A stretch of DNA of 64,000 nucleotides from Gekko japonicus (taxonomy: Eukaryota), in assembly GCF_001447785.1 (NCBI RefSeq), contig NW_015160305.1, positions 111,258 to 175,257 on the forward strand, given 5' to 3'. Shown one piece after another: positions 7,711-50,337 of this stretch. A program made the translations under genes and the position numbers. Numbering within the stretch: position 1 is the first letter of the stretch; every line of letters begins with the position of its first letter. Under the pieces are notes generated by a model, which was not told where the DNA came from, ran no database searches, and saw nothing but the letters and a program-made list of their open reading frames with translations.

Positions 7711-8393
7711 ATGGGTGGGAAAAGTTCGACACCAGTGGTAAGCAATAAACCCGAAGAGAAGTCTGCCAGGGAAGAAGAAAATCTTTCAGATCTGACTGTG
7801 TCAAGAAAAGCCACACTTGACATTGCCGTCACAGGACTGACAGGTGCTGGTAAATCGTCCCTTGTCAACGCCTTGCGGGGTCTATCAGATTTTGATGAGG
7901 AGGCAGCCAAAACTGACGTGATAGAAGGAACAACAGAACCAATGGGTTACGCGCACCCCACCTTTCCAGATGTCACAGTATGGGACCTACCAGGAATTGG
8001 GACACCTAATTTTAAAGCCGAGGAATACCTGGAAAGAGTAAATTACAGCCAATATGATTTCTTCATAATCGTCGCTTCTAATTCCTTCACTGTCAATGAC
8101 ATCCAGCTGTCCCAGGCAATTCAGAAAATGAAGAAGCGGTTCTACTACGTGTGGTCCAAAATGGACATTGCCATTAGTAGCGAAAAACTGAACCCAGACT
8201 TCAATGAGGAAGCAACCCTTCAGAAAGTCAGGGAATATTGCCTTGATAATTTGGTGGAGGCTGGTATTTCTTCTCCGGAGATTTTCCTGGTCTCCAATTG
8301 GTACCCGGAAAAGTATGACTTCCCCCTCCTGCAGAGAACTTTAGAGAATGAAATCGAGGCTCTGAGGAAACGTATCTTAAGACCAGCTGACAA
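7711..8393 (+). CDS. IRG gene 1, coding exon A: myristoylation motif plus G domain only
   Basis: Acceptor TTTTCAG| at 7685, ATG 7711 in GCCATGG context, MGGKSS; G1 GLTGAGKSS, G3 WDLPG, G4 WSKMD; phase-2 donor AA|GTATGT at 8393 (unspliced ORF stops at 8424). Confidence 0.9.
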
Positions 8394-9374
8394 GTATGTT
8401 GGGTTTAATCAGTTGTTGATTTGATTTTCTTTCTGTATGAACAAAAAGTGTGCCCAAAAATGCAGACCTGGTTCAGGAGTGATGGAGGGGGGCAACTACA
8501 TGGATTAGAGTTACCTATTTTTGTACCTTTACTCCAATTTTAAAAAGCTGCACAATACTTTTAAATATTAGTACAAGTATATTATGACGATCAAATATAT
8601 CGTATATATTCAGTATATACGGTATAAATTCACTAAATGAATGCAAATCCCACTCCATATGGCAAAATAAATGTACTATGCACTTTTCTTTTCCTTCACC
8701 AGGGTATAAAGCTTTTGAGAGATGTGATTTCTGATTGGTGAAATGACCACAGGTGGAGAGAACAGTTTTGACTGTCTTTCCCAGTGTGTGGTGGGGCTTT
8801 TTTTGGCGGGGTCAGAAAAAACTAGAGTTCCAGTCGCAAAATTGCCTCTCTTTTCAATGCAGAAAATTAATCAAAAAAACAGCTTTTACTGTTTGATGCA
8901 TTCCAGCATTACGCAAGACATGTCAACAACCACAGGATCTCTGGAGATCTGCCATAAATAAAACCTGTTCTGTTTTGAAGGGCACCTGGTGGTTGCATTG
9001 GATTTTTCCCCTGATAAGATCCATGGTGGCTTTTCTGTTTTATCTTGTTTTTATGTATTGGCATGCATGCCCTGATGTTAGCCGCCCTGAGCCCGTTTGC
9101 GGGGAGGGAGGCCTAGAAATTGAATGAATAAATAAATAAATAAAATAAACAACTGATGGTTGCTGCTATAGCTAGATTTATTGCTGTTTGTTACTATTGA
9201 CATCAGTCCTGCTGTGCTAATCTTACTTCTTGCAGTTTCCTGTTCTTAGGTTGTTAAGGATGGCATTCTCTTTCAGGTTTTAAAATCTTTCTCTGTAAGT
9301 AGCCTAGAGCACTCACTTAATAGACAGGCGAGGGTAGGAACTTCCTAAATAAATGTTTCTTTTTTGTTTCTTAG

Positions 9375-10593
9375 AACAACCAAACCATCCAAAGGAAGCG
9401 GAATCCATTTCATCCTGCTCCAAAAAATCTTAAAAATTGACCTTGCAAAGCTGAGAGACGATCTGATGTATAGAAGTCTTGAAGAGGTGACTGAGGACAT
9501 ACGTCAAGAATTGGATGAATTACAAAATGTCAAGCTTGACATTGCCATCACAGGAGTGTCGGGTGCTGGTAAATCATCCCTTGTCAATGCCCTGAGGGGC
9601 ATGGCCGATTATGAAGAAGGTGCAGCTAAAGTTGGAATAATTCAAACAACTATGGAGTGTCACGCCTATCCACATCCCTTATTTCCGAATGTAACCATAT
9701 GGGATCTACCAGGAATTGGTACACCTGAATTTAGACCAAAGGAATACCTAGAGAAGGTCAATTTTAGCCAGTATGATTTCTTCATGATTGTCACCTCAGA
9801 ACGTTTCACTGAGAATGATGCCCTCCTGGCCCAGGAAATCACGAAAATGAAGAAGACATTTTACTTTGTGCGCTCCAAAATGGATGTCAGTATGGCTGCT
9901 GAAATTAGGGACCCAAATTTCAATAAGGACAAATCAATTCAGAAGATACGAAGATATTGCTATGATAACCTGACTAAGGCAGGAGAATCTAATCCAAGGG
10001 TTTTCCTTGTCTCCAGGCAAAATTTGAGTATGTATGATTTCCCAGATCTGCAAGAAACCTTGGAAAATAATCTGGATGATCTCAAGAGACATGCCTTAAT
10101 TCTGGCTATGCCCCTTTTCTCCAGAACAATCCTCAAAAAGAAAAAGGCTGCTATGGAGGCCCTTATATGGAAACTCGCTATTGTATCCTGTGCTATCGGG
10201 GCGCTTCCTGTCCCAGGACTTTCTTTGGTTTGTGATCTTGGCATCTTGGTAGGAGCATTGCTGCATTTCTATAAAGTCTTTGGCTTAGATGAAGCGTCCC
10301 TCCGCAGAGTTGCAAAAGTCTTTGGCAAAGATTACCAAGTTCTGAAATCTGCTATCAAAAAGTCTCCGATGTCCAGTGAGATTACACCCAAATTTGTAGC
10401 TGGCCTCTTGGCCCGGTCATTGCTCTGGGCAACTGTGAGTGTAATAGAACTGGTCTTGGATATTGTACCGGTATTGGGCTCTCTGTTTGGAGGAGTTAGT
10501 TCCTTCGTCACCACATTCTTCATGCTGAGGAGCTTCTTGAAGGACATCGTGGAAGATGCGGAGAACGTTCGGGCAAAAGCTACTGAGCCTTGA
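9375..10593 (+). CDS. IRG gene 1, coding exon B: complete p47/IRG GTPase (interferon-inducible GTPase 5-like)
   Basis: No ATG at ORF start; polypyrimidine acceptor TTTCTTAG| at 9374 in phase 2; GVSGAGKSS, WDLPGIG, RSKMD and C-terminal helical domain (PVPGLS); AATAAA at 11100-11105. Confidence 0.92.
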
Positions 10594-11656
10594 CCATCAC
10601 GATATCCCGTCACAAAGACCCAAGGCACCAATTGGGGAAGAGAGTCCCAGGTACAAACTGTGTGAAATCCTGTGCAGGACTAGAACTCGAGTATGAGTGA
10701 AAAAGGAAATTGGATTCGGATTTCAGATCAGAAGCTTATTTTTCTGTTAACCGACCCCCAACATAATTGAACTTTCCAGTATGAAATAACAAAAGAAATC
10801 TGTCTAGATGGTCCCAGTTTTGAAGCCTCCTTTCCCCATCCCTGCTTGTCCAAAGAGCTCTTCAGGGCCTCTGAAGAACCACAGGCACGGCACAATTCAA
10901 ATCAGAATTTTCTTTCATAAAAAATGCACACTAGCTAATAGTATGTTCTTGTGACCTACTTTGATTGCTTTGCACTGCAGCCCTTAGTCTGTGACAAGCC
11001 TTTTACCATAGATCATCTGCAGCCAGCATGGCCATGGGAAATTTAACAAATTTCGGTCTTTTATTCCTTTGATTTCTGTACCAGTTTTTGCATTACATGA
11101 ATAAATCTAACTTCTTATTCAAGTAAAGTGAGTGTTCTTCTGATTTCAAAGGAGGGGGTTCAACTTAGGGCCCTCTCATGCCCTACATTAACACCTAGAT
11201 TCTATCAGCCAAGAAGAGCTTTCAGGCCCTTTAGGGAAGGGGGTGGTTGAAGACTCAAATTTCACAGAGGGGCTTCTCACCTGGATCTCTCCCCAGTCAT
11301 CTATGCCAGTCAGGCTGTTCTGTAGCTCACTAGGGGGACTAGTAAACCGGAAAACAGGCTGACAGCGCTTAGGATGAAATGAAATACAATTTCTCCACTG
11401 TAATTAACAATGTTATTTTATAATAGCCAATAACACATCCACACTGTTACATATTCTGTCTTTCATATGCACACCCAAAATACAGGGGGAAAGTGGGTTC
11501 AAAAGTACAGGGAAAAAGTGGGTTGACGAAACTCCCCGGAGTTGATTTTCATTTCGTTCACAACTTCATCCAAACATACTGAAGCACCATGGTAGTCTCT
11601 CTTGAAAATCTACTGTTCATAGTGTCTTCGTATGATATTCCATGCCATGATTTCAA

Positions 11657-15702: not shown

Positions 15703-16139
15703 GTTGCAAACAGTGGATGCTCTAGGAAACAGGTGTCAAAGTCCTTTGTTATGAGGGCTGGATATGACATAAATGTCACTTTGTTGGGCCAGGACATGTA
15801 TGCCATAATATGTAACACACGGTATTGGAGATAAAACTTTTTAAAGATTATTTCAGATGCTGAATGGCAATAGCAGGTGTGATTGAATTAGGTGTGATCT
15901 GCAGAGGGGTGGAGAGAGCAGCATTGGTGTGATATACAGAGGCGTGGAGATATCAGCATTGGTAATGAGATGGGAAACCTAGATCTCAGTTTGGTACAGG
16001 AGGATTCAGTCCAGAAGGATGCAAAGAATAAATGGAAATAAGTCTGAAGAAATGAGCAGTGACTCACAAAAGCACATACCCTGCCACAATTTTGTCTGTC
16101 TTTAAAGGTGCTACTGGACTCTTACTCTTTCTACCACTA

Positions 16140-16520
16140 TTAGAAACCACAACATTCAAAAACCAGTGGGGGAACATTTTAACCTTCCAGGGCATTCAGT
16201 TGCTGACCTAACAGTAGCAGTTCTCTTACAATGGAATTTCAAAGGGAGATTAGAAAGAGAGACTGATGAATTGCAATTGATCATGAAGCTCAAGACAACA
16301 CAGACTCCTGGACTGAACTGAGACCTAGGTTTCTTCTCTCATCACCAATGCCTGCTATTGTCTTTCGGCATCTGAAATCACCTCACTCTCTAAGGTATAA
16401 GGACAGATGGACTCACATTCCAGCTGTATCTGAAGAAGCGAGCAGTGATTCATGAAAGCTCATGCTCTGCCACAAACTTTGTTAGTCATTAAAGTGCTGC
16501 TGCACTCTTGCTCCCTTTCA
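16140..16520 (+). mobile_element. Penelope-like element fragment (GIY-YIG C-terminus and 3' tail)
   Basis: Translates to 'QKPVGEHFNLPGHSVADL...RETDELQLIMKLKT', typical of the Penelope endonuclease end. Confidence 0.65.
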
Positions 16521-17216: not shown

Positions 17217-17538
17217 CAGTGATGGCGAACCTTTTAGAGACCGAGTGCCCAAACTGCGACCCAAAACCCACTTATTTATCGCAAAGTGCCAACACGGCAA
17301 TTTAACCTGAATACTGAGGTTTTACTTTAGAAAAAAAACAACTCATACATTAACTTAAGATGATCCAAACAAAGTAAGGAAAGCAATCCCAAATGCTTTC
17401 ATTTACTTAAAATTATTTGGCAGAGAATTAGACACTTTAATGATGGTCTGGGCCTGGCTGGGGTGATGGCACGCGTGCCCACAGAGAGGGGCTCTGAGTG
17501 CCACCTCTGGCACCCGTGCCATAGGTTCGCCACCACTG
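17217..17538. mobile_element. hAT MITE (322 bp)
   Basis: TIR CAGTGATGGCGAACC / GGTTCGCCACCACTG, 8-bp TSD CTCTAGGA. Confidence 0.88.
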
Positions 17539-17801
17539 CTCTAGGACATCTGTTCAGGCCTTTTGGAACTTATTGTTGCAGAAGGACTTTAATTTTGGAC
17601 TAAGAACAGAGAGGGTCTTGTCTGCTTACAGCTCTGTCTGAATATTTTTTTTGGATACCACGGTTTTAGGAATGTCATGTGATGGGACATAGATGGGGGG
17701 GAGTTAACATGTAAACTGCTTTCTTTAAGTACACTTTGGGCAGGAAAGTGGTTAATAATTATACTAAGCTCAATAAATAATAAAAGGACAACTGAATATG
17801 C

Positions 17802-18100
17802 AGTTTTCACTTCAATTGCTGCTACCTGAGAAAGACTCCAACCAGCTGCATTGTTAGTGTAAAATCCCTTCCCCTTTCTTCCTGGAAGGGCCGACCAAAA
17901 CAAGGGAGTGGAGCTGAAACTTGCTTTCGCTTTTGTTGCCTGGCTGACTTTGGCTCTTCCTTTATCAGAAAAGGCAGCAAAGACCAGAGAAGCTTTTTGA
18001 ATGGACAAAGGAGAGGCCTCCCCCTCCGGAACCAAGCCTCTGTCCACCCTGTGAGTTTACAACCTCTACAGATACTTCAACCCCGCCAAGATCAGGAACG
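17802..18100 (+). promoter_or_regulatory. Interferon-responsive promoter and non-coding exon 1 of IRG gene 2
   Basis: AGTTTTCACTTC 17802-17813, GAS TTCCTGGAA 17879-17887, TTTCGCTTTT 17925-17934, donor G|GTAAGC at 18100. Confidence 0.6.
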
Positions 18101-19769
18101 GTAAGCCAGACTCTCTCTGCTATCCGTCCACCACTCAGCCTCTCCTGCATTTCAGCAACTCTGCTTTAGTGATCAGAACCGACATTGTTTCAAAATACCA
18201 GGTTTTAAAAAAATGTGGGCGCAGAGCAGATTTAACTGAGGGCTGCAAGGAGAAAGAAGCCAGCAGTGTCCCTGCTTTTTCTTCCTTTGAAGCCATAAAT
18301 CCAGCTGCAGTTCAGCCCTGCAGGAAGATTCACAGCTGGTCTGTCTCTGTCTGCTCTATCCCAGATTCCATTTCAACAAAGCAGTGTAATTTAAGAGCGT
18401 TTCTTACTGTTACTGGTTACAGTACAGTGAGTACCGTGAGAGCCAGTTTGGTGTCGTGGTTAAGGGAGAATCGGGTTTGATTCCCCACTCCTCCACTTGC
18501 ACCTGGCTGGATGACCCTGGGCAAGCCATAGCTCTGATAAGAGCTGTTCTTGAAAAAGAGCCGTTTCTGTCAAGAGCTCTCTCAGCCCCACCTGCCTCAC
18601 AGGGTGTCTGTTGTGGGGAGGGGGAGGGAAAGGAGTTTGTAAGCTGCTCTGAGACTCCATTGGGTAGTGAAGGGTGGGGTATAAATCCAATCTCCTCCTC
18701 TTCTTCTATTTTTACCTCACAGGGTGTCTGTTGTGGGGAGGGGAAGGGAAAGGAGTTTGTAAGCCGCTCTGAGACACATTTGGGTAGTGAAGGGCGGGGT
18801 ATAAATCCAATCTCTTCTTCTTCTTCTACTTGTTACTATCAATATCAAACAGGTGCTCTTTTAAAATACAAAAGGGCTTTGTGTCTTTGGCATGCACAGC
18901 TAGGACAGCAGGCACATTTACTTGCTTTATGATGTTTTCCACGGAGTACATAACAGGAAGAAGCAGGTGAAGTGTTTGCCTTCCCTTCAAGTAGATCAGG
19001 GGTCTTCAATGTGGTGCCCATGAGTGTCCACGAATACATTTTCTGGAGCCCACCCAGTGTCTTTAGAAAGTGGATGAGGCTTTTGCCCGGCAAGCCTTCT
19101 GATTGGCCATTGGAGGTTTGATTGGCTGTGCAGATTTTTTTGATATTAATAAAGGGGTTGTGCAATATCTTTTGTGATATTTTAAGAGACGATACTTAGA
19201 TGTTTTCATACATGATGTATTATGGCTTATATGATAAATAATATATGGTGAATAAATTGTAAAAATATAAAACAAAAAATATACAAAAATTATTTGAGAT
19301 ATTCGTCTGTAGCACAGTATTTGCTGATTGACGGTAAGCTGTGGCAGCCATTTTGTGACTGGCTCTGCCTCCTGAGGCAGCTATTTCCTGGCAGCCATTT
19401 TGTGGCTGCACCCATGATACTGTGTCAGAATTCTGAAGGTGCCTCCAAGCTCCTGATCTGGACACTGGGTAAAAAAAATCACATCCATATTTTTTGCTTA
19501 TTGTGCCATGAATATATCTTAGTTTCTTCATCATCCTCATGTTCCCTCTGTTGTTGTTAGCTATATTTCAACTGATGTCCCCTTCCTGTACCATCCCTAA
19601 ATATTCCTCCCTTCAAGAGGGAATATACTTGGCGGCTGACCCTTTAGCTGTCGAAAGGTGCCAGAGCCCTGCCAGAAAGAAAATTGGCAACCCTAAGAGG
19701 ACCTTCTCATCACAGAACTTGAAAGTTAATAAATGAAAGAATGAAAATTTGAGTGTCACTATTCAACTT

Positions 19770-20055
19770 AACATAAGAACATAAGAGAAGCCAATGTTGG
19801 ATCAGGTCGATGTTCCATCTAGTCCAGCACTCTGTCACAGGGTGACAGAGTGCTGGACTAGGTGCCATCAGGAGGTCTATCAGTGGGGCCAGGTGCCATC
19901 AGGAGGTCTATCAGTGGGGCCAGGACACCAGAAGCCCTCCCACTGTTGCCCCCGCCCAAAGCACCAAAAATACAGAGCATCCCTTGCCCAAGCCTGTGAG
20001 TTCCTATCTATACCTCGTGGCTAATAGCCACTGATGGACTTCTGCTCCATATGCA
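19770..20055 (-). mobile_element. CR1 LINE 3' end fragment
   Basis: ACATAAGAACATAAGA tail (reverse of the CR1 8-bp repeat tail) followed by CR1-like 3' UTR. Confidence 0.6.
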
Positions 20056-20799
20056 GGCCCGTAGCCAGGATTTTTTTAGTTGGGTGTCTGGACCAAGGAC
20101 AACCCCTCTCCCATTCTCAGGCGCTGAACTCACAGCCACCTGGGGCCCTCGGGGAACTCACCGGGTCCTGGTCCTTTGTTAAGGCTCTTTAGCATCTGGG
20201 TTCCCTTTGAGGATGTACGTAGATGTTCAGCAAGTACTCCTGGCACAGCAAATTTTTAAAAAGTCTCTCTGCATTTATTCAAATTGTTCAAATAATGAAG
20301 AGTGTTTGCTGGGCAGAAACCACTCACAAATCACAACATTGGCAAAACAACAACAACACTATACTCGTGCTGGGCAGAGGCCTAGTCTCTGAATCACTAA
20401 ATACTTGGAGGCTTCCCTTTGTGGGGGTGATCTTAGAACTCGACTGTCTCACTCAAAGGCTTAAGAAAGAGAATCTGTTCTGATAGGAACGGTCCTTGGT
20501 ATTCTGCTTGAAGCTTTGATTCAAGTCTTCTCCGATAGCGCTGCCGTCCCGATAGCTAACCTGCTGAGGCTGTCCGGCATCTCCCTTTTGTCAGCCCCCA
20601 TGACCCCTGTTAGTCAATCAGGGCATAGTTGACTAATCCCCATTGCTAGCCGGGAACCAGATAAAAGCATCTCATGCCAGCTGGTCAAGGCCCCCAGGTG
20701 CTTTTAATTAATGCTTGGCCCCAACAGGCTGCAACTAACCTGTAAGAGCTTACAACTTGATCGCACTTAATGAAAGCCTCAAAATCTACAAGTCCTGAT

Positions 20800-21005
20800 C
20801 AATGTTCCCCCTAAGCGGAGTTAGTGTGAGCTAGCTCACAGTTTTTTAGCCTCTGGCTCACACATTTTTGTCTTAGCTCAGGAAAGATGGCTCCAGAGCA
20901 AACTAATTTCTACAGCAGCCAAATCACTCACTCACAACTTTAATGTTAGTAGCTCACAAAGTAGAATTTCTGCTCACAAGACTCCACAGCTTAGAGGGAG
21001 CATTG
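20800..21005 (+). mobile_element. hAT MITE copy 3
   Basis: Same TIRs, TSD GTCCTGAT. Confidence 0.9.
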
Positions 21006-21195
21006 GTCCTGATCCTTACAATGGGGAACATTTAAATTTCTTAGGGGGCATTGCTTAATCAAATTAAAGGAATACCCGGCTCCTTCCCTGCACCAACCAC
21101 TTCTTGGGGGCCCTGGGCTGGATGGCAAGTCGTGGGGCATTGCCAGTAAGTCGGGGGGGGGGACTACCCCCAAGATGCCCACCTTTTATACTGTT

Positions 21196-21310
21196 TTGTT
21201 GTTGTTCAGTCGCACAGTCGAGTCCAACTCTTTGCGACCCCATGGACAAGATCTCGCCAGGCCCTCCTGTTTTCCGCTGTCCTCTGAAGTTTGCTCAATT
21301 TCATGTAGTT
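21196..21310 (-). mobile_element. BovB/RTE LINE 3' end fragment
   Basis: Reverse complement GTCCATGGGGTCGCAAAGAGTTGGACTCGACTG...(CAA)n. Confidence 0.65.
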
Positions 21311-21954
21311 GTCCCTCAAAAGAATAAATCTAATACACAAGGCTGCTGAATACAGATTCTGAATATTGTCCACCTAGCTCATTATGGTATTCTCCTGCTG
21401 GCAACTACTTTCTGGGGTCTCCAATGGAGAAAGACCTTTCTCAGGGCCCCCTGCCTCTTCCTCTTGTCACATGTTGCTCTTCAGTGGGGAGTATAACAGT
21501 CAGGACAAAGAGCCTGGAAGAAGCCAAAGCTCAGTTACCTGAATTTACTGTTGTAGGCCTGGCCAGCCAAAAGGGGAGCTACTCACTCTTAGATGAGTAC
21601 ATTCTCCAATATAGTTAACTGGGCTAAGGAAGGCATGTTTTTCTAACACGCAGAGGAGTGGGTTATATCACATCATGAACCTCACAAATTGAGCTGGTTT
21701 CTTTAGACCCTAAACATTTATGATGGCTTGTGGTTCATGAAATGAACTGAACCACATTCTCCCAGTTTGTGCACACCCCTAAGCATGTCTGGGTACCTTT
21801 GACCTTACAAATGAAGCAAGTGAACTGATGACCAAAGCCAGGGCCTTTTTGGTGGTGGCACCATGTCTCTGGACAGTTGTTCCCAGGGTATCTGGCTTTG
21901 TTAGTGTTGATCCACACTAGGGTGAGGAACTTCCTCTTTTTTGGAGGTGAATTG

Positions 21955-24900
21955 TGTTAGATCGCGCTAACAAAGGACTCGTAGAGTGATTCAGCAAGTG
22001 ATTCAGCTTTATTAGAAGTAACGAACAAGCACTAACTCAGTAAGAAACCAGAACAGAAAACAGTGGGAGCTTATGCTCCTTTTAAACATAACCGGGCTAA
22101 TGTAGCCACGCCTATTTACAAATAACAACCAATGAGATTGCTTGGATAAGGGCCAATGGGAGTCTTTCCCTCCTAGGGAATGGTATCGTTCTGATTGGTC
22201 GCTGTTACGAAGCGACCAATAGGAAGTTCGCTCAGAGGAGCCCTGGTCTGGCTCGAAGCTTAACATAGGAGTCCTATGAGGTGATTCATGTAATCAGTTC
22301 AATACATTACAATTCCTCCCCCCTAAGTTAAGCCATCATCCCAATTGTTTTATTATTTACATACATTCAAGTCATGCTGTTGTACATCAACTGTTCCAAA
22401 ATACTTTATTACACTCGTAGTCTTTTAGATAAGTCGGCATCTGCCGCGTACGCTGAGACCTGCGAAGCGGTGCAGGCTCTATAGACACACAAGGTTGTGA
22501 GTCACTGTGGGGTTCACTACAGCCTGGTTCAGGCACAAACTCTACTGGGATTTCAGCCCCGCACACAGGGTTCTGCCCTGACTCGGGGACAGTACCGGGC
22601 CTTTCGGTACTCACCGCCTGCTCTGGGGGTCTCCACTCAACATCAGGGGAATCAGCCGTCGGAGAGTCAGCGCTGTCCCTAGCCCAACGTCTCCTTAACG
22701 GATCTATGTGGCGCCGCCATATTCGACCGTCAGCTAACTGCACCACATACATTCGAGTACCCACAGAGTCGGATATAACCCCAGGAAGCCACAAGTGCCC
22801 GTTTGCATAATTTCGTGCGAAAACCTTGTCCCCTTTTTCAAACATGCGCACCTTCGGTTGCGCCGTGGTACGCTCGGATTGCTCTTCAGTGAGGTCTGGG
22901 TGCATTCGGTTCAAACGGGTCGTGAGTCTCCGCCCCATTAACAATTCGGCCGGACTACGGCCTGTAGCACTACAGGGGGTGGTGTGCTGCAGCAAAAGAA
23001 AGGAGCCCAGCCTCTGGCTCCAGTCCCCTTCGTCCATTTTACCCAGGGCCTCTTTGGCCGTCCTGACCATCCGTTCGGCTTGGCCATTAGATGCCGGATG
23101 GAAAGGGGCCGAAGTCATTTGGCGTATGCCATTACTCGTGAGGAAGAGCCTAAATTCCTCAGACACAAATTGAGGCCCGTTGTCACTGACGATGACGTCA
23201 GGCAACCCGTGGGTGGCAAAAAGTCGGCGGAGCGCATGGATCACAGCAAGTGATGTGGTCGATTTCATATGCACGACCTCCAGCCATTTGGACATAGCGT
23301 CCACCACAATTAGGAACATTTGCCCTTGGAGAGGGCCAGCAAAATCTATATGCAATCTGGCCCAGGGTTTACCAGATGACTCCCAGCCTTGGGGTGTAGC
23401 TTGTGGGGGATCGGGTCTGACTTGCTGGCATTTGGGACACCCTCGTACCCATTCTTCGATCTCTTTGTCCAGCCCCGGCCACCAGACATACCCTCTGGCC
23501 AACGCTTTGGTGTGTACCATACCGGGGTGACCCTCGTGCAGCGACTCTAACACTCTCGTCCTGAGTTTGTCAGGAACCACCACCCTGTTCCCCCATAATA
23601 CACAGCCCTTAGAAATGGATAGTTCATTTTGACGGCTTTTGTAAGGGCCGAACTCCGGTTCAACGCTTCCAACCGGCCACCCCCTCCAAACCCAGTTTAA
23701 TACTCGGGACAGCACGCTATCCTTGGCCGTGTGTGCTGCAATGTCCCTGGATGATACCGGGGGTCGAGGAAGCTCCTCAATTGCCAAGACCTCACAGGCG
23801 GGGGCAGGGTCTGCGCCAATGTCCGGCACCGGGCACCGGCTGAGGGCATCCGCATGCCCAATCGCTTTCCCAGGCCGGTGCTCTAAGTCAAAATCATAAG
23901 CCTGCAAAAATATCGCCCATCTAAGCATGCGTGGGGACATGATGTTTGGCAATTGCTTATCGGGCGCAAAAATCCCCAGTAGCGGCTTGTGGTCAGTGAC
24001 CAGCAAAAATCGTCTGCCAAAAATAAAATCATGGAACTTTTTGACAGCCGCTACCAACGCCAGACCCTCCTTGTCTATCTGGGCATAGTTCCGCTCTGCC
24101 GCAGATAGTGATCTAGAATAAAAAGCGATAGGCGCTTCGCTCCCATCAGGCATCAGATGGCTTAAAACTGCGCCTACTCCAAACGGTGAAGCGTCAGCAG
24201 CTAACACCAGGAGCTTGTGTTCATCATAATGCGTGAGTACGGCATTAGATGTCAGCAGCTCCTTGACTCCCACAAAAGCCTTTTCCTCGGCCTGCCCCCA
24301 CTTCCATTTTGCCTCCTTGTGCAAAAGCGCGTGCAAAGGGGCCGCCACTGATGCCTTATGCGGTAAAAACGCATGATAAAAATTCAGGAGTCCTAAAAAG
24401 GATTGGAGCTCCTTCTTACTCACCGGCCTGGGGGCGTTTTGGATTGCAGATACCTTCTCATCCGTGGGGTGGACTCCCTCTGCGTCAATGCGAAACCCCA
24501 GGAAGTCCACACTTTCCACCCCGAGCGTGCATTTTGAGCGCTTAACTCTGAGGCCGGCATTTTGAAAACGCCTGAGGACCTCTTTAACCCGGTCCAGTAG
24601 TTCCTGTTCAGACCCGCCCGCAATCAGCACGTCGTCAAAATAGGGCACTGTGCCAGGTACCCCCCTTAGTAGACGTTCCATGAGGCCCTGAAAAATCCCA
24701 GGTGCTACGTTGACCCCGAATTGCAGCCTGTTCACTTTAAAAGCCCCTTGGTGGGTTACAATTGTTTGGGCCTCGGCAGCCTCCGGGGTGACAGGCAACT
24801 GCTGGTATGCCTGGGCCAGGTCAAATTTGGCGAAAATCTTGCCACCCCCCAGGGAAGCCAAAATGTGGCTTATTACCGGGACCGGGTACGAATGTTGCTG

Positions 24901-26928: not shown

Positions 26929-27597
26929 AATTGTGTTTAGCAGGGTTTTTTTTGCTCCGATTTGTTTTGCAACCAGCTACAATATACCAACAAATCACTT
27001 TTTGGTGATACATCAGTTTGGTATAGTGGTTAAGACCACGGACTCTAATCTGGGAGAACCGGGTTTGATTCCCCACTCCTCCACATCCAGCTGCTGGTGT
27101 GACTTTGGGTCAGTCACAAGTTATTTCAGAACTGTTTTCGAAAGAGCAGTACTCTCAAAAGAGGTCTCTCAGCCCCACCTACCTCCCAGGGTGTCATGGG
27201 GAGGGGAAGGGAAGGGGATTGAAAGGGGAGACTCCTTTGGGTAGTGAAGGGCAGGGTATAAATCCAATCTCCTCTCCCCTCTCCAATGTCCTTATTGTTT
27301 TGTCCTTCCAATAGGCTGTCTTCTAGTGAGATTGTCTTCTGGTAAGCTGCTTTGGATGCAAGATTCTTTTTGAAAAGTAGGGTATAAATACATTTATGAA
27401 TAACAATGGGAAAGACTTAACGCATCTGTTAAGGATTTGTTTTTCTACCCAAGCAGTCTAAAGTAAATTGTCCCTCCCATACAAACACACAACGGAATCC
27501 AGATTGTCAGAGTAAAATGTGATGGGAGCATTGTACGGAGGAGTTAACACAGTATTTTTATTTATTTTTCAGGCCAACTGAATCTTCAAGAAGAGCC

Positions 27598-28256
27598 ATG
27601 GGTGGGAGAAGTTCGACACAAGTAAGCAGTGAAGCTGAAGAGAAGTCTGCCAAGGAACAAGGAAACTTCTCAGATCTAACTGCATCAGGAAAAGCCACAC
27701 TTGACATTGCCATCACGGGACTGACAGGTGCTGGTAAATCGTCCCTTGTCAATGCCTTGCGGGGTCTATCAGATTTTGAAGATGAGGCAGCCCATATTGA
27801 TGTGATAGAAGGAACAACAGAGCCAATAGGTTACCTGCACCCCACCATTCCAGATGTCACAATATGGGACCTACCAGGAATTGGGACACCTGATTTTAAA
27901 GCTAAGGAATACCTGGAAAGAGTAAATTACAGCCAGTATGATTTCTTCATAATCGTTGCTTCAAATCGCTTCACCGTCTACGACATCCAGCTGTCCCAGG
28001 CAATTCAGAAAATGAAGAAGCAGTTCTGCTACGTGTGGTCCAAAATGGACATCAGCATTAAGAATGCCAAACTGCATCCAGACTTCAATGAGGAAGCAAC
28101 CCTTCAAAAAGTCAGGAAATATTGCCTGGATAATTTGGTGAAGGCTGGTATTTCTTCTCCGGAGATTTTCCTAATTTCCAGTTGGTTTCAGGAAAAGTAC
28201 GATTTCCCCCTCCTGCAAAGGACTCTGAGGAGACATATCTTGAGACCAGCTGACAA
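27598..28256 (+). CDS. IRG gene 2, coding exon A: myristoylation motif plus G domain only
   Basis: Acceptor TTTTCAG| at 27572, MGGRSS, GLTGAGKSS, WDLPG, WSKMD; phase-2 donor AA|GTATGT at 28256 (unspliced stop at 28287). Confidence 0.9.
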
Positions 28257-29975: not shown

Positions 29976-31194
29976 ATCAACCAAACCATCCAAAGAAAGT
30001 GGAATCCGTTTTATCTTCCTCCAAAAAATCTTAAAAATCGACCTTTCAAAGCTGAGGGATAAACTGATGAACAGAAATCTTGAGGAGGTGGCTGAGGAAA
30101 TTCGTCAAGAATTGGAGGAATTACAAAATGCCAAGCTTGACATTGCCATCACAGGAGTCTCGGGTGCTGGCAAATCATCCCTTGTCAATGCCCTGAGGGG
30201 CATGACAGATTGGGAAGAAGATGCATCTGAGGTTGGAATAACGCAAACAACTATGGAGTGTCAAGCCTATCCACATCCCTTATTTCCAAACGTAACCATA
30301 TGGGATCTACCAGGGATTGGGACCCCTGAATTTAGACCAAAGGATTACCTAGAGAAGGTCCATTTTAGCCAGTATGATTTCTTCATGATTGTCGGCTCAG
30401 AACGTTTCACTGAGAATGACGTCCTCCTGGCCCAGGAAATTAAGAAAATGAAGAAGAAATTTTACTTTGTGCGCTCCAAAATGGATGACAGTATGGCTGC
30501 CGAAAGTAGGAATCCAAACTTCGATATGGACACATCCATTCAGAAGATACGAAAACATTGTTATCATGAACTGACAAAGGCAGGAGAATCTAATCCAAGG
30601 GTTTTCCTCATCTCCAGGCGAGATTTGAGTATGTATGATTTCCCAGATCTGCAAGAAACCTTGGAAAATGACCTGGATGATCTCAAGAGACATGCCTTAA
30701 TTCTGGCTATGCCCCTTTTCTCCAGAAAAATCCTGGAAAAGAAAAAGGCTGCTATGCATGCCCTTATATGGAAACTTGCTATTGTATCCAGTGTTATCGG
30801 GGCGATTCCTGTCCCAGGACTTTCTTTGGCTTGTGATCTTGGCATCTTGGTAGCAGCGCTGCTCCGTTTCTACAAAGTCTTTGGCTTGGATGAAGAGTCC
30901 CTCCGCAGAGTTGCAAAAGTGTTTGGCAAAGATTACCAAGTGCTAAAATCTGCTATCAAAAAGTCTCCCATGTCTAGTGAGATTACGCGCAAATTTGTAG
31001 CTGGCCTTTTGGCCCGGTCATTGCTTTGGGCCAGTGTGAGAGTAATAGAACTGGTCTTGGATTTTGTACCAGTGTTGGGGTCTCTGGTTGGAGGAGTTAG
31101 TTCCTTCGTCACCACATTCTTCATGCTGAGGAGTTTCCTGAAAAATATTGTAGAGGATGCAGAGAATGTTCGGGCAAAAGCTACTGAGCCTTGA
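29976..31194 (+). CDS. IRG gene 2, coding exon B: complete IRG GTPase
   Basis: Phase-2 acceptor TTTCTTAG| at 29975, no ATG at ORF start, all G motifs and C-terminal helical domain present; AATAAA at 31705-31710. Confidence 0.92.
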
Positions 31195-33298
31195 CCATCA
31201 TGATGTTCCGTCACAAAAACCCAAGACACCAATTGGGAAAGGAATCTCAGGTGTAAAATGTGTTGAATTATTCACAGGACCAGAACTCAAGAATGAACGA
31301 ATAAGGAAACTGGATTTGAATATCAGATGAGAAGGTTACTTTTTTTTAATTGACCCCCAATATAATTGAACGTTTTAGTATGAAATAACAAAAAAAATAT
31401 TCTGTCTAGATGGTTCCAGATCTGAAGCCTCCTTTCCCCCTCCCTGCTGGTCCAAAGAGCCATTCAGGGCCTCTGAAGAATTGCAGGCACAGCACAATTC
31501 AAATCAGAATTTTCTCTTTTAAAAAGATACACGCTAGCTAATAGTATGTTTTTGTGACCTTCCTTTGCCTGCTTTGCACAGCAGCCCTTAGTCTGTGACA
31601 AGCTTTTTACCATAAATCATCTGTAGCCAGCATGGCCATGGCAAATATAACACATTTTTGAACTTTTACTCCTTTGATTTCAGTACCAGTCTTTGCATTT
31701 CATTAATAAATCTAACTTCTCATTCAAGTAAAGTGTGTGGTCTTCTGATTCAAGGGGGGGGGGGGTTCGGCTTAAGACTCTCTCCTGCCACACATTAACT
31801 CCTGGGTTCTCTCAGTCAAATTCAGGTTTTCAGGGCATTTAGGGAAGTGGGTGATTGAAGACTCGAATCTCACAGAGTGGCTTCTCACTTGGATCTGTCC
31901 CCAGTAATCTATGCCAGTCTGGCTGTTCCATAGCTCTCTAGGTGGAAGCAGGCTTTGGTTTGGGTGCATTCAGGGCCAGAGGTAAAGCTGAAGTCCTTAG
32001 ATACCCATCAAATCCCATTTCACAAATTAATCCATGGCGTGCTGGGGAGAGGGGTAAAGATTCTTTGAAGAACCCCAGGGGCACGACAAATGTTCCCACT
32101 AATTTAACTGGGGCAGACAGTAGTTCATCTGGCCGATGATGCTCTTGGATTACTCTTAGCTTGCTCTTTAGCAACAGTTATTATTCTTATTAGTATTTGT
32201 ATCATCAGCACCACCCTCATTTATAGCCTTCCTCTCTCACTGGGGCTCAAGGCAGATTACAAAATTCGATCAAAGAGCACATATCTCTAATTGAAGCAAA
32301 ATACCAGTGCAGTGGGCTAGGACTGAAGAGCTGCAAAAAGATGCAGAAAAACCCACAAACAAAAAATGCAGTAGATTTCGGCAAAGGACTACTGAAGGCG
32401 ACACAACTAAGGGTGCCGTCTGTAGGATACCTGTGACAAGAGCCAGGTCAGGAGTCAGGGGTTGCCAGGACCCCGCTGACCACTGATGGGGGATGGGGAG
32501 GTAGGATCCAGATTGGGAAACGAGGGCAATTAGAGTGGGCGAAGGTGGCCCCAAGGCCAAGCGCTTGCCTCTCCCCCCCCCCGCGCCCACAGGAGCCAAA
32601 GGCAAGGCTGCTCTCAGATCCAAGCCCCTGTTTAGCCTTGCCTCCCCCCCCACCTGCCCAAGCCACCAGGAGTGCCAAAGGCAAGGCTGCAGCTCCACCC
32701 TCAAAAACCCTGCTTCCCCCAGGCACTGTCCCCAGTCCTCCAGGAAATTCCCAAGCCAGAATTGGCAACCTTGCCGTATTAGAACCAGACATGGAACTAA
32801 AGGAGAAAGCCTCCCTTCGTGGGGAGGGGGGGGAGTTGATTTGGGATGGTTCCGAGCATTGTTTGGGTCCTGAGATATGTGAAGTCTGGCTCAGAATTCA
32901 GGCTGTTCATGCATTTCTCTGATGCTTATCAGCCTGGAAGGCGGACACTCCCCCTCCCTGCTGCTCACAGCCTTTTCTTGTCAGGGCAGCCGCTGAGAGG
33001 AAAACGAAAGCTAAAGGCCGCTCTTGGCCTAGGCAGCTTCTATTTCTTGTAAATCAGCTGACTGAGCAGCCAAAGTACAGGGAGGAGGAGTAAACAAGGC
33101 GGCATTCATGAGGGAGTGAACAAACAGTTTAGCTGGATTTCCTCGTCCAGTACACAGCAACAGTTACAGAGATGGCGACATAACCCAACCATATTTTAAC
33201 TATATCAAGTATAAAGTAATTATATTAGCATACATACCTAATGCTTAAGAGTATATTATTGGACTGATTTTGGCCCCAGTCTTGTCTTTTGTATATAA

Positions 33299-39996: not shown

Positions 39997-42906
39997 TTTG
40001 TTTTTGGTAAACATTTTATTTTTAGGATACATTCAACAAAGTTCAACACTTGTATTACAATTCTTATCCCTTTATATCCTACCCTCCTCCCTTCCCCCCC
40101 CCCCATGTATGGCTTCCCACAGTGCTACAACCTCCTGCATAATCCTTAGGTTACTCTTAAGTACTCCTCTTTATCTCTACACATTCAACAGGTAACTTGT
40201 TTTTTCACAATTCTCTATGCTCAATAGTTATCAAAGCAAAATAAATTGTCTCTCACATCCCAATATTTTTCCAAGTATTCTTTTAAGTCTTTCCAGTCTT
40301 CAAAAAAGTCTTCTGCTGCCATATTATTCAGTTTCCTTGTCATCTTATCCATTTCAACCATAAAAAGTAGTTTTTTTGATCCTTTTAATCCATTCTCCAA
40401 TTCCAGGAACTTCCTCCTGTTTCCAACTTTGCGCATATGTCATTCTGGCAGTCACAATCGTATACCACATAAGCGTCCTTTTCGCCACATTGACCTGTTC
40501 CATTTTAAGTCCCAAAAGTAATATTTCTGGTTCCTTTTTAAATGTGCAGTTAACTATTTTTTCCATCTCTGCATGAATCTCAACCCAAAACTTCTTAGCT
40601 TTTCCACATGTCCACCACATATGGTAAAGCGAGCCTTCTACTTTTTTACATTTCCAACATTTACTCGACATATTTGTATTCATATTTGCAATCTTTTTTG
40701 AAGTCATATACCGTCTATACATCATTTTATAACAGTTCTCTTTTAAATTATTACATGTCGATATTTTCAAGGCACTCTTCCATAAATATTCCCAAGATGA
40801 CATAGGAATTTCCTTATTCATATTTATTGCCCATTTTACCATTTGCTCTTTAACTACCTCGTCCTCAGTGTACCATTTTAACAATATTTTGTACATTTTT
40901 GAGATAAGTTTCTAACCTCCCTCCAACCACAAATTCTCTATATCCTTATATTTCCCTCTAAAGCCAAAGGTCTTTTTGTCTTTTTTAAACAAATCATTAA
41001 TTTGTCTATATTGGAACCAACCATATTTAAATGCTAGATCTTCTTCCATTTTCATTTCATATGTCTTTCCCACAGGCTTCAACATGTCTTTATATTATAC
41101 CCAATCTTCTCCTTTATATATCAAAAAAGGCTTTATCACCTCTGTCGGTACAATCCAAAGAGGTCTCTGATCAGAAAAAAACCTTCTGTATTTAATCCAT
41201 GTATCAAAAAGTACTCTCCTGATGTAATGATGCTTAAAAAGACCATCCATTTTCACCTTCTCGTACCATAAATATGCATGCCATCCAAATTTGCAGTCAT
41301 GACCTTCTAATGCCAACAATTTCTTATTGCTTAAAGTGGCCCACTGCTGCAACCAAGTTAAACACACTGCTTCATGGTACAACCTCAAATTTGGCAGCTG
41401 GAATCNNNNNNNNNNNNNNNNNNNNNNNNNNNNNNNNNNNNNNNNNNNNNNNNNNNNNNNNNNNNNNNNNNNNNNNNNNNNNNNNNNNNNNNNNNNNNNN
41501 NNNNNNNNNNNNNNNNNNNNNNNNNNNNNNNNNNNNNNNNNNNNNNNNNNNNNNNNNNNNNNNNNNNNNNNNNNNNNNNNNNNNNNNNNNNNNNNNNNNN
41601 NNNNNNNNNNNNNNNNNNNNNNNNNNNNNNNNNNNNNNNNNNNNNNNNNNNNNNNNNNNNNNNNNNNNNNNNNNNNNNNNNNNNNNNNNNNNNNNNNNNN
41701 NNNNNNNNNNNNNNNNNNNNNNNNNNNNNNNNNNNNNNNNNNNNNNNNNNNNNNNNNNNNNNNNNNNNNNNNNNNNNNNNNNNNNNNNNNNNNNNNNNNN
41801 NNNNNNNNTAGGGCTTATTTTTGGGGTAGGTATTATTATTATTTAGTCTTTTTCACAAGGCCTTCTATTGTCTTGTCTTCCTTAATCTGCTTCAGTAATA
41901 CTTCTAAAATCCATATAAATAATAATGGGGACAAAGGACATCCTTGCCTCGTCCCCTTCTGCACTTTAAAGTATTCCATCACATCTAAATTTATAACCAA
42001 TGCTGCTTTTTGTTCTGTATATATTGCTTCAATTATATTTCGGAATTGCTCTCCTATGTCAATCTTATCCACTACACTATTATACATAAAGTCCCAGTTC
42101 AAATTATCAAAAGCTTTCTCCGCATCTGCAAAAAAGAAACCAATCTCCTTCTCAACATGCTTATCATAATATTCAATTGCATCAATCACTATTCTCATGT
42201 TGTCCTTTATCTGTCTGTTGGGCAAAAAACCTGCTTGCTCTTCTTCTATAACCTCTTTTAAATATATCTTGAGTCTCTTCGAGATAATCTTGGCTAACAA
42301 TTTATAGTCAGTATTCAAAAGGGAAATTGGTCTATAATTTTTCACATTTGTTAAATCCTGAGATTCCTTGGGGATAAGCGAAATCGTGGCCTCTTTCCAT
42401 GATTCTGGTATCTTCTTCGTTTCTCGTATATCATTCATCAAAAGTTCAAAGATTGGGATTAGCTTCTCTTTAGTTTTTTTATAAAATTTTGCTGTGAAGC
42501 TGTCTGGTCCTGGAGCCTTTCCCAACTTTGCTTCCTGAATTGCCATATCTATTTCTTCCTTCTTTATTGGGCCATTCAACATCTTTTTAAATTCTTCCGA
42601 AACTTTTTCCAAATTTATTTTATCCAAATAGGTTATTATCTTATTTTTATCTATTGTTTTTCTTGCAAAAAGATTTGCATAGTATTTTTTAAAAAACTCT
42701 TTTGATTCCGTTCATATCCACAATTTCTTTTCCCCCATCTATTAATTTGTTTATAATTTTATTCTCCCGTCTCTTTTTCAGTTGTCAAGCCAAAAATTTT
42801 CCTGGTTTATTTGCCCCCTCAAACGACTTCTGTTGGAGTCTCTTCAAATTCCAATATATTTCCTGATTTAATAAGGCATTTAATTGCTCCTGTAAAATTT
42901 GAATTT
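39997..42906 (-). mobile_element. 5'-truncated, degenerate L1-clade LINE (ORF2 RT and C-terminus), spanning an assembly gap
   Basis: KAPGPD, NYRPISLLNTDYK, DAEKAFD, GTRQGCPLSPLLF and CWKC..H..W.C motifs; stops and frameshifts; A-rich tail near 40000. Confidence 0.9.
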
Positions 42907-44225: not shown

Positions 44226-45384
44226 ATAGTGACATGTCTACATCACTGCCTACGTGACCCAGAAGTGACGTCATCACTTCTGGGATGTTGGGATGACACT
44301 CTGGTATCTGGGCAACAATTCTATTGTAAATTTGTCTTGGATGGCAGGTAGAGGAGAGTCCATTGGAGATCCCCTGTGAGTTTGGTGTCTCTAGCACACC
44401 GAAGGGGGGATTATATTGCATCATGAACCTCACAAACTGAACTGGTTTCTTTAGCCCCCTAAACATTCATTATGGTTTGCGGTTCATGAACTGGACACAC
44501 CATGAACCACGAACTGAACTGAACCACATTCTCCTAGTTCATGCACACCCCTAACCATGACTAAGTACCCTTGACCTTAGAAATGAAGCAAGTGAACTGA
44601 TGACCAAAGCCAGGGCCTTTGCAGTGGGGGCACCATCTCTCTGGATAGTTGTTCCCAGGGTGTCTGGCTTTGTTAGTGTTCATCCACACTAGGGGGTGGA
44701 ACTTGTTCCCTCTTTTTGGAGATGAACTAAGTTTAGTCATTTGTTTTGCTCCAATTTGTTTTGCAACTAGGTACAATATACCAGCAAATCACTTTTTGGT
44801 GATACACTAGTTTGGTGTAGTGGTTAAGAGCATGGGCTCTAATCTGGGAGGACCGGGTTTTATTCCGCACTCCTCCACATGGTGTGACCTTGGGTCAGTC
44901 ATAAGTTCCTTAAGAGCTGTTCTCTCAAGGGCAGTTCCTGAGAGAGCTCTCTCAGCCCCACCTACCTCACAGGGTGTCTGCTGTGGGTATGGGAAGGGAA
45001 AAGGATTGTAAACCACTCTGAGACTCCTTTGGGTAGTGAAGGGTGGGGTATAAATCCAATCTCCTCTCACCTCTCCAATCTCCTTATTGTTTTGTCCTTC
45101 CAATAGGCTGTCTTCTAGTAAAATTGTCTTCTGGTAAGCTGCTCTGGATGCAAGGTTCTTTTTGAAAAGTAGGGTATAAATACATTTATGAATAAAAATG
45201 GGGAAGACTTCACCCATCTGTTAAGGATTTGTTTTTCTATCCGAGCAGAATTAAGTAAATTGTCCCTTCCACACACACACAATTGAATGTCAGAGTAAAA
45301 TGTGACGGGAGCATTATACGGAGGAGTTAATAATCGCAATATTTGTAGTTAGTTTTCAGGTCAACTGAATCTTCAAGAAGAGCC

Positions 45385-46061
45385 ATGGGTGGGGGAAGTT
45401 CAACACCAGTCAGCAGTGAACCTGAAGAGAAGTCTGCCAAGGAAGGAGGAATCCTCTCAGGAAAAACCATGCTTGACATTGCCATCACAGGGGTATCAGG
45501 TACTGGCAAATCATCCCTTGTCAATGCCCTGAGGGGCCTATCAGATTTTGATGAAGGTGCAGCTGAAATTGGTGTGAAGGAAACAACAACAGAGCCAACT
45601 GGTTACCCCCACCCCACCTTTCCAGATGTCACAATATGGGACCTACCAGGAATTGGGACACGTAATTTTAAACCCAGGGAATACGCAAAAAAGGTAAATT
45701 TTAGCCAATATGATTTCTTCATAATCGTCACCTCTGTTTGCTTCACTGTCAATGACATCCTGCTATCCCGGGAAATTCAGAAAATGAAGAAGCGGTTCTA
45801 CATTGTGAGGTCCAAAGTGGACTTCCGCATTGAGAATGAAAAACGGCGTCCAGACTTCAGTGAGGAAACAACCCTTCAAAAAGTCAGGAAACATTGTTTT
45901 GATAATTTTGGGGAGGCTGGTATTTCTTCTCCAGAGATTTTCCTCGTCTCCATTTTCTATCTGGAAAAGTACGACTTCCCCCTCCTGCAAAGAAGCTTGG
46001 AGAATGAAATTGAAGACCTCAAGATACGTGCCTTAATAGCAGGAAAGAAGAAATACGCGAG
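45385..46061 (+). CDS. IRG gene 3, coding exon A: myristoylation motif plus G domain only
   Basis: Acceptor TTTTCAG| at 45359, MGGGSS, GVSGTGKSS, WDLPG, RSKVD; phase-2 donor AG|GTATGT at 46061 (unspliced stop at 46080). Confidence 0.9.
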
Positions 46062-48227: not shown

Positions 48228-48435
48228 CAATGCTCCCTCTAAGCTGTGGAGTCCTGTGATGCAAAAATCCAACTTTTGTGAGCTCCTGGCATTAAAGTTG
48301 TGAGTGAGCGATTTCGCTACTGCATAAATGAGTTTGCTCTGGAGCCATCCTTCCCAAGCTAAGACAAAAACGTGCGAGCCAGAGGCTAAAAAACTGTGAG
48401 CTAGCTCACACTAACTCAGCTTAGAGGGAACACTG
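48228..48435 (-). mobile_element. hAT MITE copy 8
   Basis: Same TIRs, imperfect TSD CTTGTGAG/CTCATGAG. Confidence 0.85.
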
Positions 48436-49118
48436 CTCATGAGTGGTGCCGGTGATTTTGGCCACTGGGCACAAAGCCAAAACTGCCGTTAGGGGAGGCC
48501 AGAAGACGGAAGAATGTGAATGCCCACCACCTCAACAGGGTGGTAATCTGGTTGTACTAGCTGGGAAGGAATATTGATTTTATTTATTTGTGAAAACATT
48601 CATATACTGCCTTTGTGAAAACATTCATATACCGCCTTTCCTTAGAGTTCAAGGCAGCTTACAATAATAATTAAATAATAATTAATAATTTACAGCAACT
48701 AATAATTAAAAACATTTGCTTTTTAAGACTAGTAGCCAACCCCAATAATGATACTATGGGTGGAGTGATACCAGGTGTGAAGAAATGCATTTTTTCCTGG
48801 GAGGTTTGAAATGAGCCAAACCTTCACTTTGCATTTGAAAAGCCCCCCCCCTGCAGACAACACACAGGAAGGGGGGGGATTAGAGCCCTTGCTTTCCAGT
48901 CAGCCCACTAATGATAGCTTCTTGACAAATTACTTAGTTTCTCTACTATCTTCCAAGAACAAAGGCCATATTGGCTTTCAAATGATTGGAGGACTGGTTC
49001 TCACAGAGCAAATTCAAGGAGCATACAACAAATAAAGAAAAGCCTATAACCATGAGTGCTGTTACAGTTACAAATGTGGGGTAGGAGTGTCTGAATAAAT
49101 CTTTGTTTTCCTTACTAG

Positions 49119-50337
49119 GTCAACTGCAGCATGGGGAATGACTGGAATTGGTGCTTTCTTCTCAAAACATGTCTTAGGAATTGACCTTGCAGAGTTGAGG
49201 GATGCTACAGCACAAAGAAGTCTCAAAGAGGTGGCAGACGAAGCTCGTCAAGAATGGGGTGCACTGAAAAATGCCAAGCTCAACATTGCAATCACAGGTG
49301 CATCAGGTGTTGGTAAATCATCCCTTGTCAACGCGATGAGGGGCATGACTGATTATGAAGAAGGTGCAGCCCAGACTGGAGTGGTGCAGACAACTATGGA
49401 TGTCCATGGGTATCCTCATCCCTCATTTCCCAATGTAACTTTGTGGGACATACCGGGAATCAGGACCCCTACATTTAGACCAGAGGATTACCTAAAGAGG
49501 GTCAACTTTAGCCAATATGATTTCTTCATCATTGTTGCCTCAGAACGGTTCCGTGAGAATGACGTCCTCCTGGCCCAAGAAATTAAGAAAATGCAGAAGA
49601 AGTACTATTATGTGTTTTCCAAGGTGGATGTCTGTATGGATTCCGAGAGAAGGAGACCCAACTTCAGTGAGGACAAAACCCTTGAGAAGATAAAGAACTA
49701 TTGCTGTGAGAATCTGAGAGAGGCAGGAGAGCCTTCTCCAAGGGTTTTCCTCGTTTCCAGGTGGCACTTGAATATGTACGATTTCCCTCTCTTGCAAGAG
49801 ACCTTGGAAATGGAACTAGACGGTCTCAAGAGGCATGCATTCATTCTGGCTTTGCCAGTTTTCTCAAGAGAAATCCTGGAAAAGAAGAAGGCTGCTATGG
49901 AGGCCCATATATGGAAAGTAGCCCTTGTGTCTTGTGCTATTGGGGTAGTTCCTGTCCCAGGACTTTCTTTTGCCTGTGATCTTAGCATCTTGGTAGGAGC
50001 GCTGCTCATTTTCTACAAGGTCTTTGGGTTGACTGAAGAGTCCCTCCGCAGAGTTGCAAAACAGGTTGGCAAAGATTATGAAGTGTTGAAATCTGCTGTC
50101 AAGAAGTCTCCAATGTCTAGTGAGATCACTCCGGAATTTGTAGTGGGTCTCTTGGCCAGGTCATTGCTGTGTGGGTCCCTGATGACATTAGAACTGGTCT
50201 TTGATTTTGTACCAGTGTTGGGCTCTCTGGTTGGAGGGGCTAGTTCCTTTGTCACCACATTCTACATGCTGAGGAGCTTCCTGAAGGACATTGTGGAAGA
50301 TGCTGAGAACGTTCGGGCAAAAGCTGCTGAGCCTTGA
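49119..50337 (+). CDS. IRG gene 3, coding exon B: complete IRG GTPase
   Basis: Phase-2 acceptor CTTACTAG| at 49118, in frame with ATG 49138; GASGVGKSS, WDIPG, FSKVD and C-terminal helical domain. Confidence 0.92.

Follow-up and report, generated by a model that had tools for sequence, protein, structure and literature searches.

Three tandem IRG genes in Gekko japonicus that probably couple a bare G domain to a near full-length GTPase

The 64,000-nucleotide stretch of the Gekko japonicus genome studied here (contig NW_015160305.1, positions 111,258 to 175,257 of the forward strand; hereafter the window) holds three units, each of which spreads a member of the IRG family (immunity-related or p47 GTPases) over a short coding exon and a long one, called here exon A and exon B. 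In units 1, 2 and 3, exon A ends at 8393, 28256 and 46061, each time two bases into a codon and with a GTATGT donor next to it, and exon B begins at 9375, 29976 and 49119, each time after a polypyrimidine tract and AG and with the third base of the interrupted codon. These sites, all phase-2 and GT..AG, were read directly from the letters and agree at all six coordinates with an earlier reading of the DNA made without searches (the sequence-only reading). The joined frames run through K-TTKPS in unit 1, K-STKPS in unit 2 and R-STAAW in unit 3 and are free of stops, giving proteins of 633 (227+1+405), 625 (219+1+405) and 631 (225+1+405) amino acids, which confirms the lengths first proposed and the 405 codons that follow each junction codon. 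The long open reading frames (ORFs) of units 1 and 2 do lack a start ATG, as had been claimed, in that the first Met of exon B comes no earlier than residue 31; in unit 3 it stands at residue 7. We consider this gene structure, and the placement of the units in the family as tandem IRGs, to be very probable, and we think it likely that the account as a whole, three tandem IRG genes together with the working proposed below, is the best explanation of the locus.

Both exons of every unit encode GTPase sequence. Each of the six matches the Pfam profile IIGP (PF05049), at 219-308 bits against a cut-off of 24, so the two matches expected per protein are indeed there; the short exons cover roughly positions 31-225 of the 375 in the profile and the long exons 6-371. 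Exon A aligns with residues 67-252 of Irga6 and 61-257 of Irgb10, which amounts to a G domain without either helical domain, as the sequence-only reading had it. Exon B aligns with Irgb10 40-400 and is a near full-length IRG. The helical domains that flank the G domain are present, then, in the second GTPase of each protein and missing from the first. The motifs GxxxxGKS, DxxG and SKxD can be read in canonical form in all six exons, and both GTPases are of the GKS type. The earlier description of the first GTPase as IRGM-like does not suit it, there being no GMS P-loop; its GKS motif and its myristoylation motif (MGxxxS) were correctly seen. Exon A starts with MGGKSS in unit 1, MGGRSS in unit 2 and MGGGSS in unit 3, a myristoylation-type MG followed by S or T at position 6 that is kept in 29 of 30 squamate tandems, and judging from this motif the first GTPase probably carries an N-terminal lipid.

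Protein searches were run exon by exon and not on the joined proteins, whereas the fold was made from P0001, the public model of the unit 1 protein. With 30 homologs in the alignment, AlphaFold2 gave a predicted local distance difference test score (pLDDT) of 75.9 and a predicted template modelling (TM) score of 0.71, with disorder at residues 1-32 and 221-254. The protein is laid out as a disordered tail of about 30 residues, a G domain, a disordered linker of about 34 residues and a near full-length IRG. Foldseek comparison returned TM scores of about 0.7 to Irga6, Irgb10 and Irgb6, and GM4951 was also a fold match.

The joining of the two exons is seen in transcripts of unit 1. Four runs were mapped onto 5100-11000 of the window. 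A contig of run X1 crosses the joint 8393>9375 (GT..AG, 981 letters skipped) with 135+148 letters and 0 mismatches, and the same joint occurs in a contig of X4, a run of another study; the junction that the sequence-only reading had singled out for checking was in this way found in contigs of two studies. The A-B intron of unit 1 is nearly devoid of contig cover. Contigs of X1, X4 and X6 have loose ends just before exon A that match 3778-3800 exactly, and we therefore place there an exon of the 5' untranslated region (5'UTR), spliced 3801>7686 with GT..AG ends and one ambiguous base. At the other end, the 3'UTR of unit 1 extends to about an AATAAA at 11100. Unit 1 is expressed.

Public gene models agree with this structure. 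A search with exon B of unit 1 returned P0001, a RefSeq protein of 633 residues from Gekko japonicus, at 100% identity, and this protein consists of exon A, K and exon B of unit 1. P0021 (RefSeq, 631 residues) is made up in the same manner of exon A, R and exon B of unit 3. Both are publicly named "interferon-inducible GTPase 5-like", and their identity with the joined exons means that the gene models are already public. The evidence differs by unit: unit 1 has both RNA contigs and a RefSeq model, unit 3 has a RefSeq model, and unit 2 is supported by homology alone.

Weak contig cover of the first 300 nucleotides of the intron, in one run, and the Met at residue 7 of exon B in unit 3 would be in keeping with exons A and B yielding separate products, a truncated fragment and an ordinary IRG, the tandem then being a product of read-through or an artefact of annotation. 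We judge this to be very improbable. The in-frame GT..AG joint was recovered in two studies, the A-B intron holds no promoter or 5' exon, and exon B of units 1 and 2, its ancestral initiator lost, offers no Met in its first 30 residues. Furthermore, frame and phase are preserved in three paralogs, and the clades formed by the first and the second GTPases co-diverge across geckos.

Table 1. Features of the three IRG units, in coordinates of the window
Feature	Position	Strand	Remarks
Unit 1 promoter block	3564..3651	+	palindromic gamma-activated sequence (GAS) TTCCTGGAA at 3567-3575; TTTCGCTTTT, resembling an interferon-stimulated response element (ISRE-like), within 3627-3651
Unit 1 5'UTR exon, 3' end	3771..3801	+	donor GT 3802-3803; contig loose ends
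Unit 1 exon A	7686..8393	+	coding sequence from ATG at 7711; acceptor AG 7684-7685; MGGKSS tail and G domain only
Unit 1 A-B intron	8394..9374	+	981 nt, GT..AG; absent from X1 and X4 contigs
Unit 1 exon B, coding part	9375..10593	+	near full-length IRG, 405 codons and stop
Unit 2 promoter block and 3' end of inferred 5'UTR exon	17876..18100	+	homology to unit 1
Unit 2 exon A	27573..28256	+	coding sequence from 27598, 219 aa
Unit 2 exon B	29976..31194	+	405 codons and stop
Assembly gap (N run)	41406..41808	.	between unit 2 3' end and unit 3 exon A
Unit 3 exon A	45360..46061	+	coding sequence from 45385, 225 aa; matches start of P0021
Unit 3 exon B	49119..50337	+	405 codons and stop; ancestral MGxxISK start recognisable as IGAFFSK

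Units 1 and 2 are colinear from the promoter to the 3'UTR (3203-11338 against 17537-31946, at 72-87% identity), and unit 3 is colinear with unit 1 from the middle of intron 1 onward, its homology starting only at 43589. Because this colinearity extends over promoter, introns and exons, the three units are paralogous genes that arose by segmental duplication of a whole unit comprising promoter, 5'UTR exon, exon A and exon B. Comparison of the paralogs puts the ratio of nonsynonymous to synonymous substitution rates (dN/dS) at 0.41-0.53 in exon A and at 0.28-0.39 in exon B, and both exon classes are under purifying selection. The assembly gap lies outside all coding exons and is crossed by no claimed exon or frame, and the ORFs listed across it are artefacts of the N run. 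Homology to unit 1 did not reveal a promoter or 5'UTR exon for unit 3; these may lie in the gap, since colinearity would put them at about 41.9 kb, at the gap edge.

The exons themselves preserve hints of how the layout came about. The first residues of exon B line up with MGxxISK, the beginning of stand-alone gecko IRGs, except that the Met is gone; the former initiator region is now IHFILLQK in unit 1 and IGAFFSK in unit 3. Related acceptor sequence precedes both exon A and exon B. From this alignment and the related acceptors we conclude that the arrangement goes back to a pair of ordinary IRG coding exons, of which one lost its helical domains and became exon A, while the other lost its initiator and became exon B. 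The A-B introns hold no leftover of a helical domain. At the position of Irga6 E106, in switch I, the three genes and their gecko clade have Glu in the first GTPase and Gln in the second. We considered on this ground a catalytically dead second GTPase as a rule of the architecture and rejected it: many stand-alone squamate IRGs have Gln there too, and it is likewise frequent in the first GTPases of other gecko clades. As a separate observation on these residues, squamate IRGs, stand-alone genes included, have Glu or Gln at the catalytic Glu106 position of Irga6 (9619-9660 in the window, with equivalents in the other five exons), and at the Irga6 Glu77 position most squamate units have Val, Leu, Ile or Met.

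Proteins of about 600-680 residues with two P-loops occur in many geckos, in Anolis, Sceloporus, Pogona, Elgaria, Rhineura, Podarcis and Tiliqua, and in turtles and teleosts. The spacing between their P-loops is 182-278 residues overall, 244-255 in most squamates, 252-278 in models from Chrysemys, Pangshura and cichlids, and 246 in the gecko gene described here; such spacing implies that the first unit is short. The spacings of about 413 in Latimeria (P0053) and 378 in a goby correspond to two nearly full units. The short-plus-full layout is conserved across squamates, and the models there, as in turtles and teleosts, are annotated as "interferon-inducible GTPase 5-like". The sequence-only reading could not tell whether the architecture is undescribed; its gene models are public, and it is annotated this widely. 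Our searches of the literature for IRG tandems in reptiles or lizards came back empty, and the squamate, turtle and teleost tandem models are uncharacterised.

We built a G-domain tree on 106 rows and ran the approximately unbiased (AU) test on a 53-row subset. Eighteen gecko first units form one clade (support 99) and gecko second units another (91), and the first units of iguanians, anguimorphs, lacertoids and one amphisbaenian likewise form a single clade (99). A single clade of all squamate first units is not rejected, the tree constrained to it being even better (p-AU 0.75). The pattern differs in turtles, the coelacanth, teleosts and the skink: there, each G domain has its closest relative in the other half of its own protein, which points to separate origins, or to homogenisation, in those lineages. 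One public model among the search hits, P0015 from Paroedura picta (706 aa), has three P-loops, belonging to two G domains of the first-unit type followed by a full unit; it may be a triple tandem or the outcome of a merge during annotation.

Tandem IRGs are known from other vertebrates. Mouse Irgb2-b1 and Irgb5-b4 each consist of two full-length units, and a tandem IRG pair is also described in Fugu (Bekpen 2005; PMC1297648). In zebrafish, irgg, a canonical IRG truncated at its C-terminus, is transcribed in tandem with the quasi-GTPase irgq1 (Bekpen 2005; PMC1297648). A truncated first unit therefore has a precedent, and the claim that known tandems join only near full-length units has to be given up. 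Like the gecko genes, irgg-irgq1 has a truncated canonical upstream unit transcribed in frame with a downstream IRG-type unit; irgq1, however, is truncated and, as a quasi-GTPase, has altered GTP-binding motifs, whereas the second gecko unit spans nearly the whole IRG and keeps GKS, DxxG and SKxD in canonical form. The mouse tandems share with the gecko genes an in-frame splice to a downstream exon that has no autonomous transcript, and halves that differ from one another and make a heterodimer-like pair, but they comprise two full-length units at about 94 kDa, against about 72 kDa in the gecko, where the first unit is a G domain only. Mouse and gecko tandems are of independent origin. What sets the gecko layout apart from known tandems is the combination of a canonical full second unit, a G-domain-only first unit with its own lipid motif, and conservation throughout squamates. 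The gecko architecture is thus a variant of the known kind of tandem IRG and not a new class.

A promoter block can be recognised upstream of the 5'UTR exon, and its GAS and ISRE-like blocks are free of mismatches between units 1 and 2. Motifs of this type suggest that the blocks would serve an interferon response. A third copy of TTCCNGGAA, at 40401, was rejected as a promoter homolog because it lies in an AT-rich repeat.

We asked for a predicted complex of the first and the second unit together with two GTP and two Mg. The prediction scored 0.86 in ipSAE, an interface score, against 0.02 for the best control; at least 96% of contacts were shared among three runs, and the pLDDT of the partners did not fall below 82. 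In a calibration made without ligands, 51 out of 78 solved complexes attained the mark for a pass, as did 2 out of 108 mismatched pairs. On both sides the predicted contacts involve the P-loop, switch I, switch II, the loop after strand 4 (the trans-stabilising loop) and the G4 helix, the very elements used in the Irga6 G dimer. A parallel G dimer of Irga6 triggers GTP hydrolysis (PMC4774019; PDB 5FPH). Irga6 resembles the gecko proteins in its MGxxxS N-terminus as well as in these interface elements, which in the gecko are predicted ones. The Irga6 dimer is made of two identical chains and depends on concentration, whereas the gecko partners would be tethered in one chain, and one of them has no helical domains. 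The disordered linker of 34 residues, as modelled, is long enough for pairing within the chain.

These features lead us to propose, as the most likely working model and one we hold tentatively, a tethered intramolecular G-G pair. Interferon would switch the genes on by way of the promoter with its GAS and ISRE-like blocks, the protein would be brought to membranes by its lipid tail, and the two G domains would pair within one chain through their nucleotide faces in the manner of the Irga6 dimer. Activation of the GTPase of the effector unit, or its restraint, would in this way be freed from the need for a second molecule. The sequence-only reading had likewise imagined a covalently pre-paired G-G effector; of this proposal the pairing gains support from the controlled prediction, short of proof, while its function stays conjectural.

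An interface that is predicted to be the catalytic G interface would also fit a first unit that serves as a built-in cis brake, capping the G interface of the effector until the target membrane is reached, as the mouse GMS proteins (IRGM) do in trans for GKS IRGs. GMS regulators have Met in place of Lys in G1, whereas both gecko units are GKS. A GMS-type P-loop occurs in 0 of the 120 nearest relatives, which would suit a brake carried in cis, although the lack of GMS among 120 hits is weak evidence. The first unit is also without the helical domains that effectors need, and a regulatory role was suggested for one half of the irgg-irgq1 tandem (Bekpen 2005; PMC1297648). On the other hand, the first unit has all the GTP-binding motifs and Glu at the Irga6 E106 position and so looks like an active partner, and stand-alone gecko IRGs exist that have no cap. 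We consider a brake rather unlikely. Extended to the whole order, this idea would make the tandem a cis solution to IRG self-activation in squamates: a lipid-anchored, helix-less G domain tethered on the catalytic G interface of the effector would replace the mammalian GMS/IRGM regulators, in a fused layout kept since before the gecko-iguanian split. We offer this broader proposal as a speculation that is unlikely to hold in full.

The selection measured on the first unit bears on another role, in which it would act as decoy or sensor against pathogen effectors aimed at the switch regions of IRGs, as mouse Irgb2-b1 does toward Toxoplasma ROP5/ROP18 (PMC6420625, PMC3810784). Beyond this precedent, the genes are multicopy and exon A has a somewhat higher dN/dS than exon B. 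Yet dN/dS is well under 1 in all pairs (a pairwise comparison of three codon sequences), and the clades of first units are old and kept across squamates. The sequence-only reading had raised such a decoy or sensor domain; it finds no specific support, the first-unit dN/dS of 0.41-0.53 being that of purifying selection, and we regard it as improbable.

Several observations weigh against our account of three working tandem genes with paired G domains. Transcript support covers unit 1, without units 2 and 3, and the runs were labelled RNA by guess only; we argue that they are RNA from the spliced forms present in them. The junction contig of X4 shows six differences, with unit-2-like bases at four places and without the 21-nucleotide deletion of unit 2, and on these grounds we assign it to an allele or to one more close copy. 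No reads cross the A-B junction in the raw RNA run X19, at very low depth, and contig run X6 gave no junction-spanning contig, at low depth; since the depth is low, neither negative carries weight. Myristoylation and interferon induction are both proposed from motifs only, a perfect ISRE GAAANNGAAAC is not present anywhere in the window, and the count of GAS in the window is not above chance. As to the complex prediction, its pass may reflect memory of, or likeness to, solved IRG dimers; because IRG G dimers have been solved, it may show likeness only. The prediction also cannot separate pairing within a chain from pairing between chains.

Unit 2 adds to these points. Compared with unit 1, its exon A has a deletion of 7 residues (21 nt) in the last helix of the first GTPase, its intron 1 harbours a retrotransposon whose pol ORF, about 4.2 kb long, is intact, and no public model among the search hits matches it. 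It is a serious possibility, if not the one we favour, that this unit, alone among the three, is silent or decaying despite both open frames. Both its exons are open, however, its splice sites are intact, its promoter blocks are identical to those of unit 1, and its dN/dS against unit 1 is 0.41 in exon A and 0.28 in exon B.

Our findings show that tandem IRGs are widespread in vertebrates and have arisen or been reshaped several times. IRG biology rests almost wholly on the mouse, and the reptile family adds to it a conserved layout in which a bare G domain is tethered to a full IRG. The gene models are not new; the lizard-wide family is unstudied. The gecko tandems offer a natural experiment on how the pairing of G domains controls IRG GTPases, and, because the ratio of the heterodimer is fixed at 1:1, a tractable construct for biochemistry.

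Other elements of the window deserve brief mention. A 1388-aa open ORF at 22387-26553 on the minus strand, within intron 1 of unit 2, encodes reverse transcriptase, RNase H, integrase zinc-binding and integrase core domains, and is the pol of a Ty3/gypsy-type long terminal repeat (LTR) retrotransposon; this element (pol ORF about 4.2 kb) accounts for most of the extra length of that intron. A repeat of about 85 nucleotides at 7458-7540, 16043-16123 and 16427-16511 shows very high contig depth in runs of the RNA type, with loose ends on both sides, and is probably like a short interspersed nuclear element (SINE) with many expressed loci. The same depth and loose ends mark a second repeat, which lies in the A-B intron at about 9075-9236. 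Downstream of unit 3 there are three more N gaps (53144-53445, 56099-56251 and 60244-60255), and ORFs across them are artefacts. The GC-rich stretch at 56-60 kb holds ORFs without Pfam matches. Farther on, an ORF at 62044-62787 on the minus strand carries an endonuclease/exonuclease/phosphatase domain of the kind found in ORF2 of long interspersed nuclear elements (LINEs).

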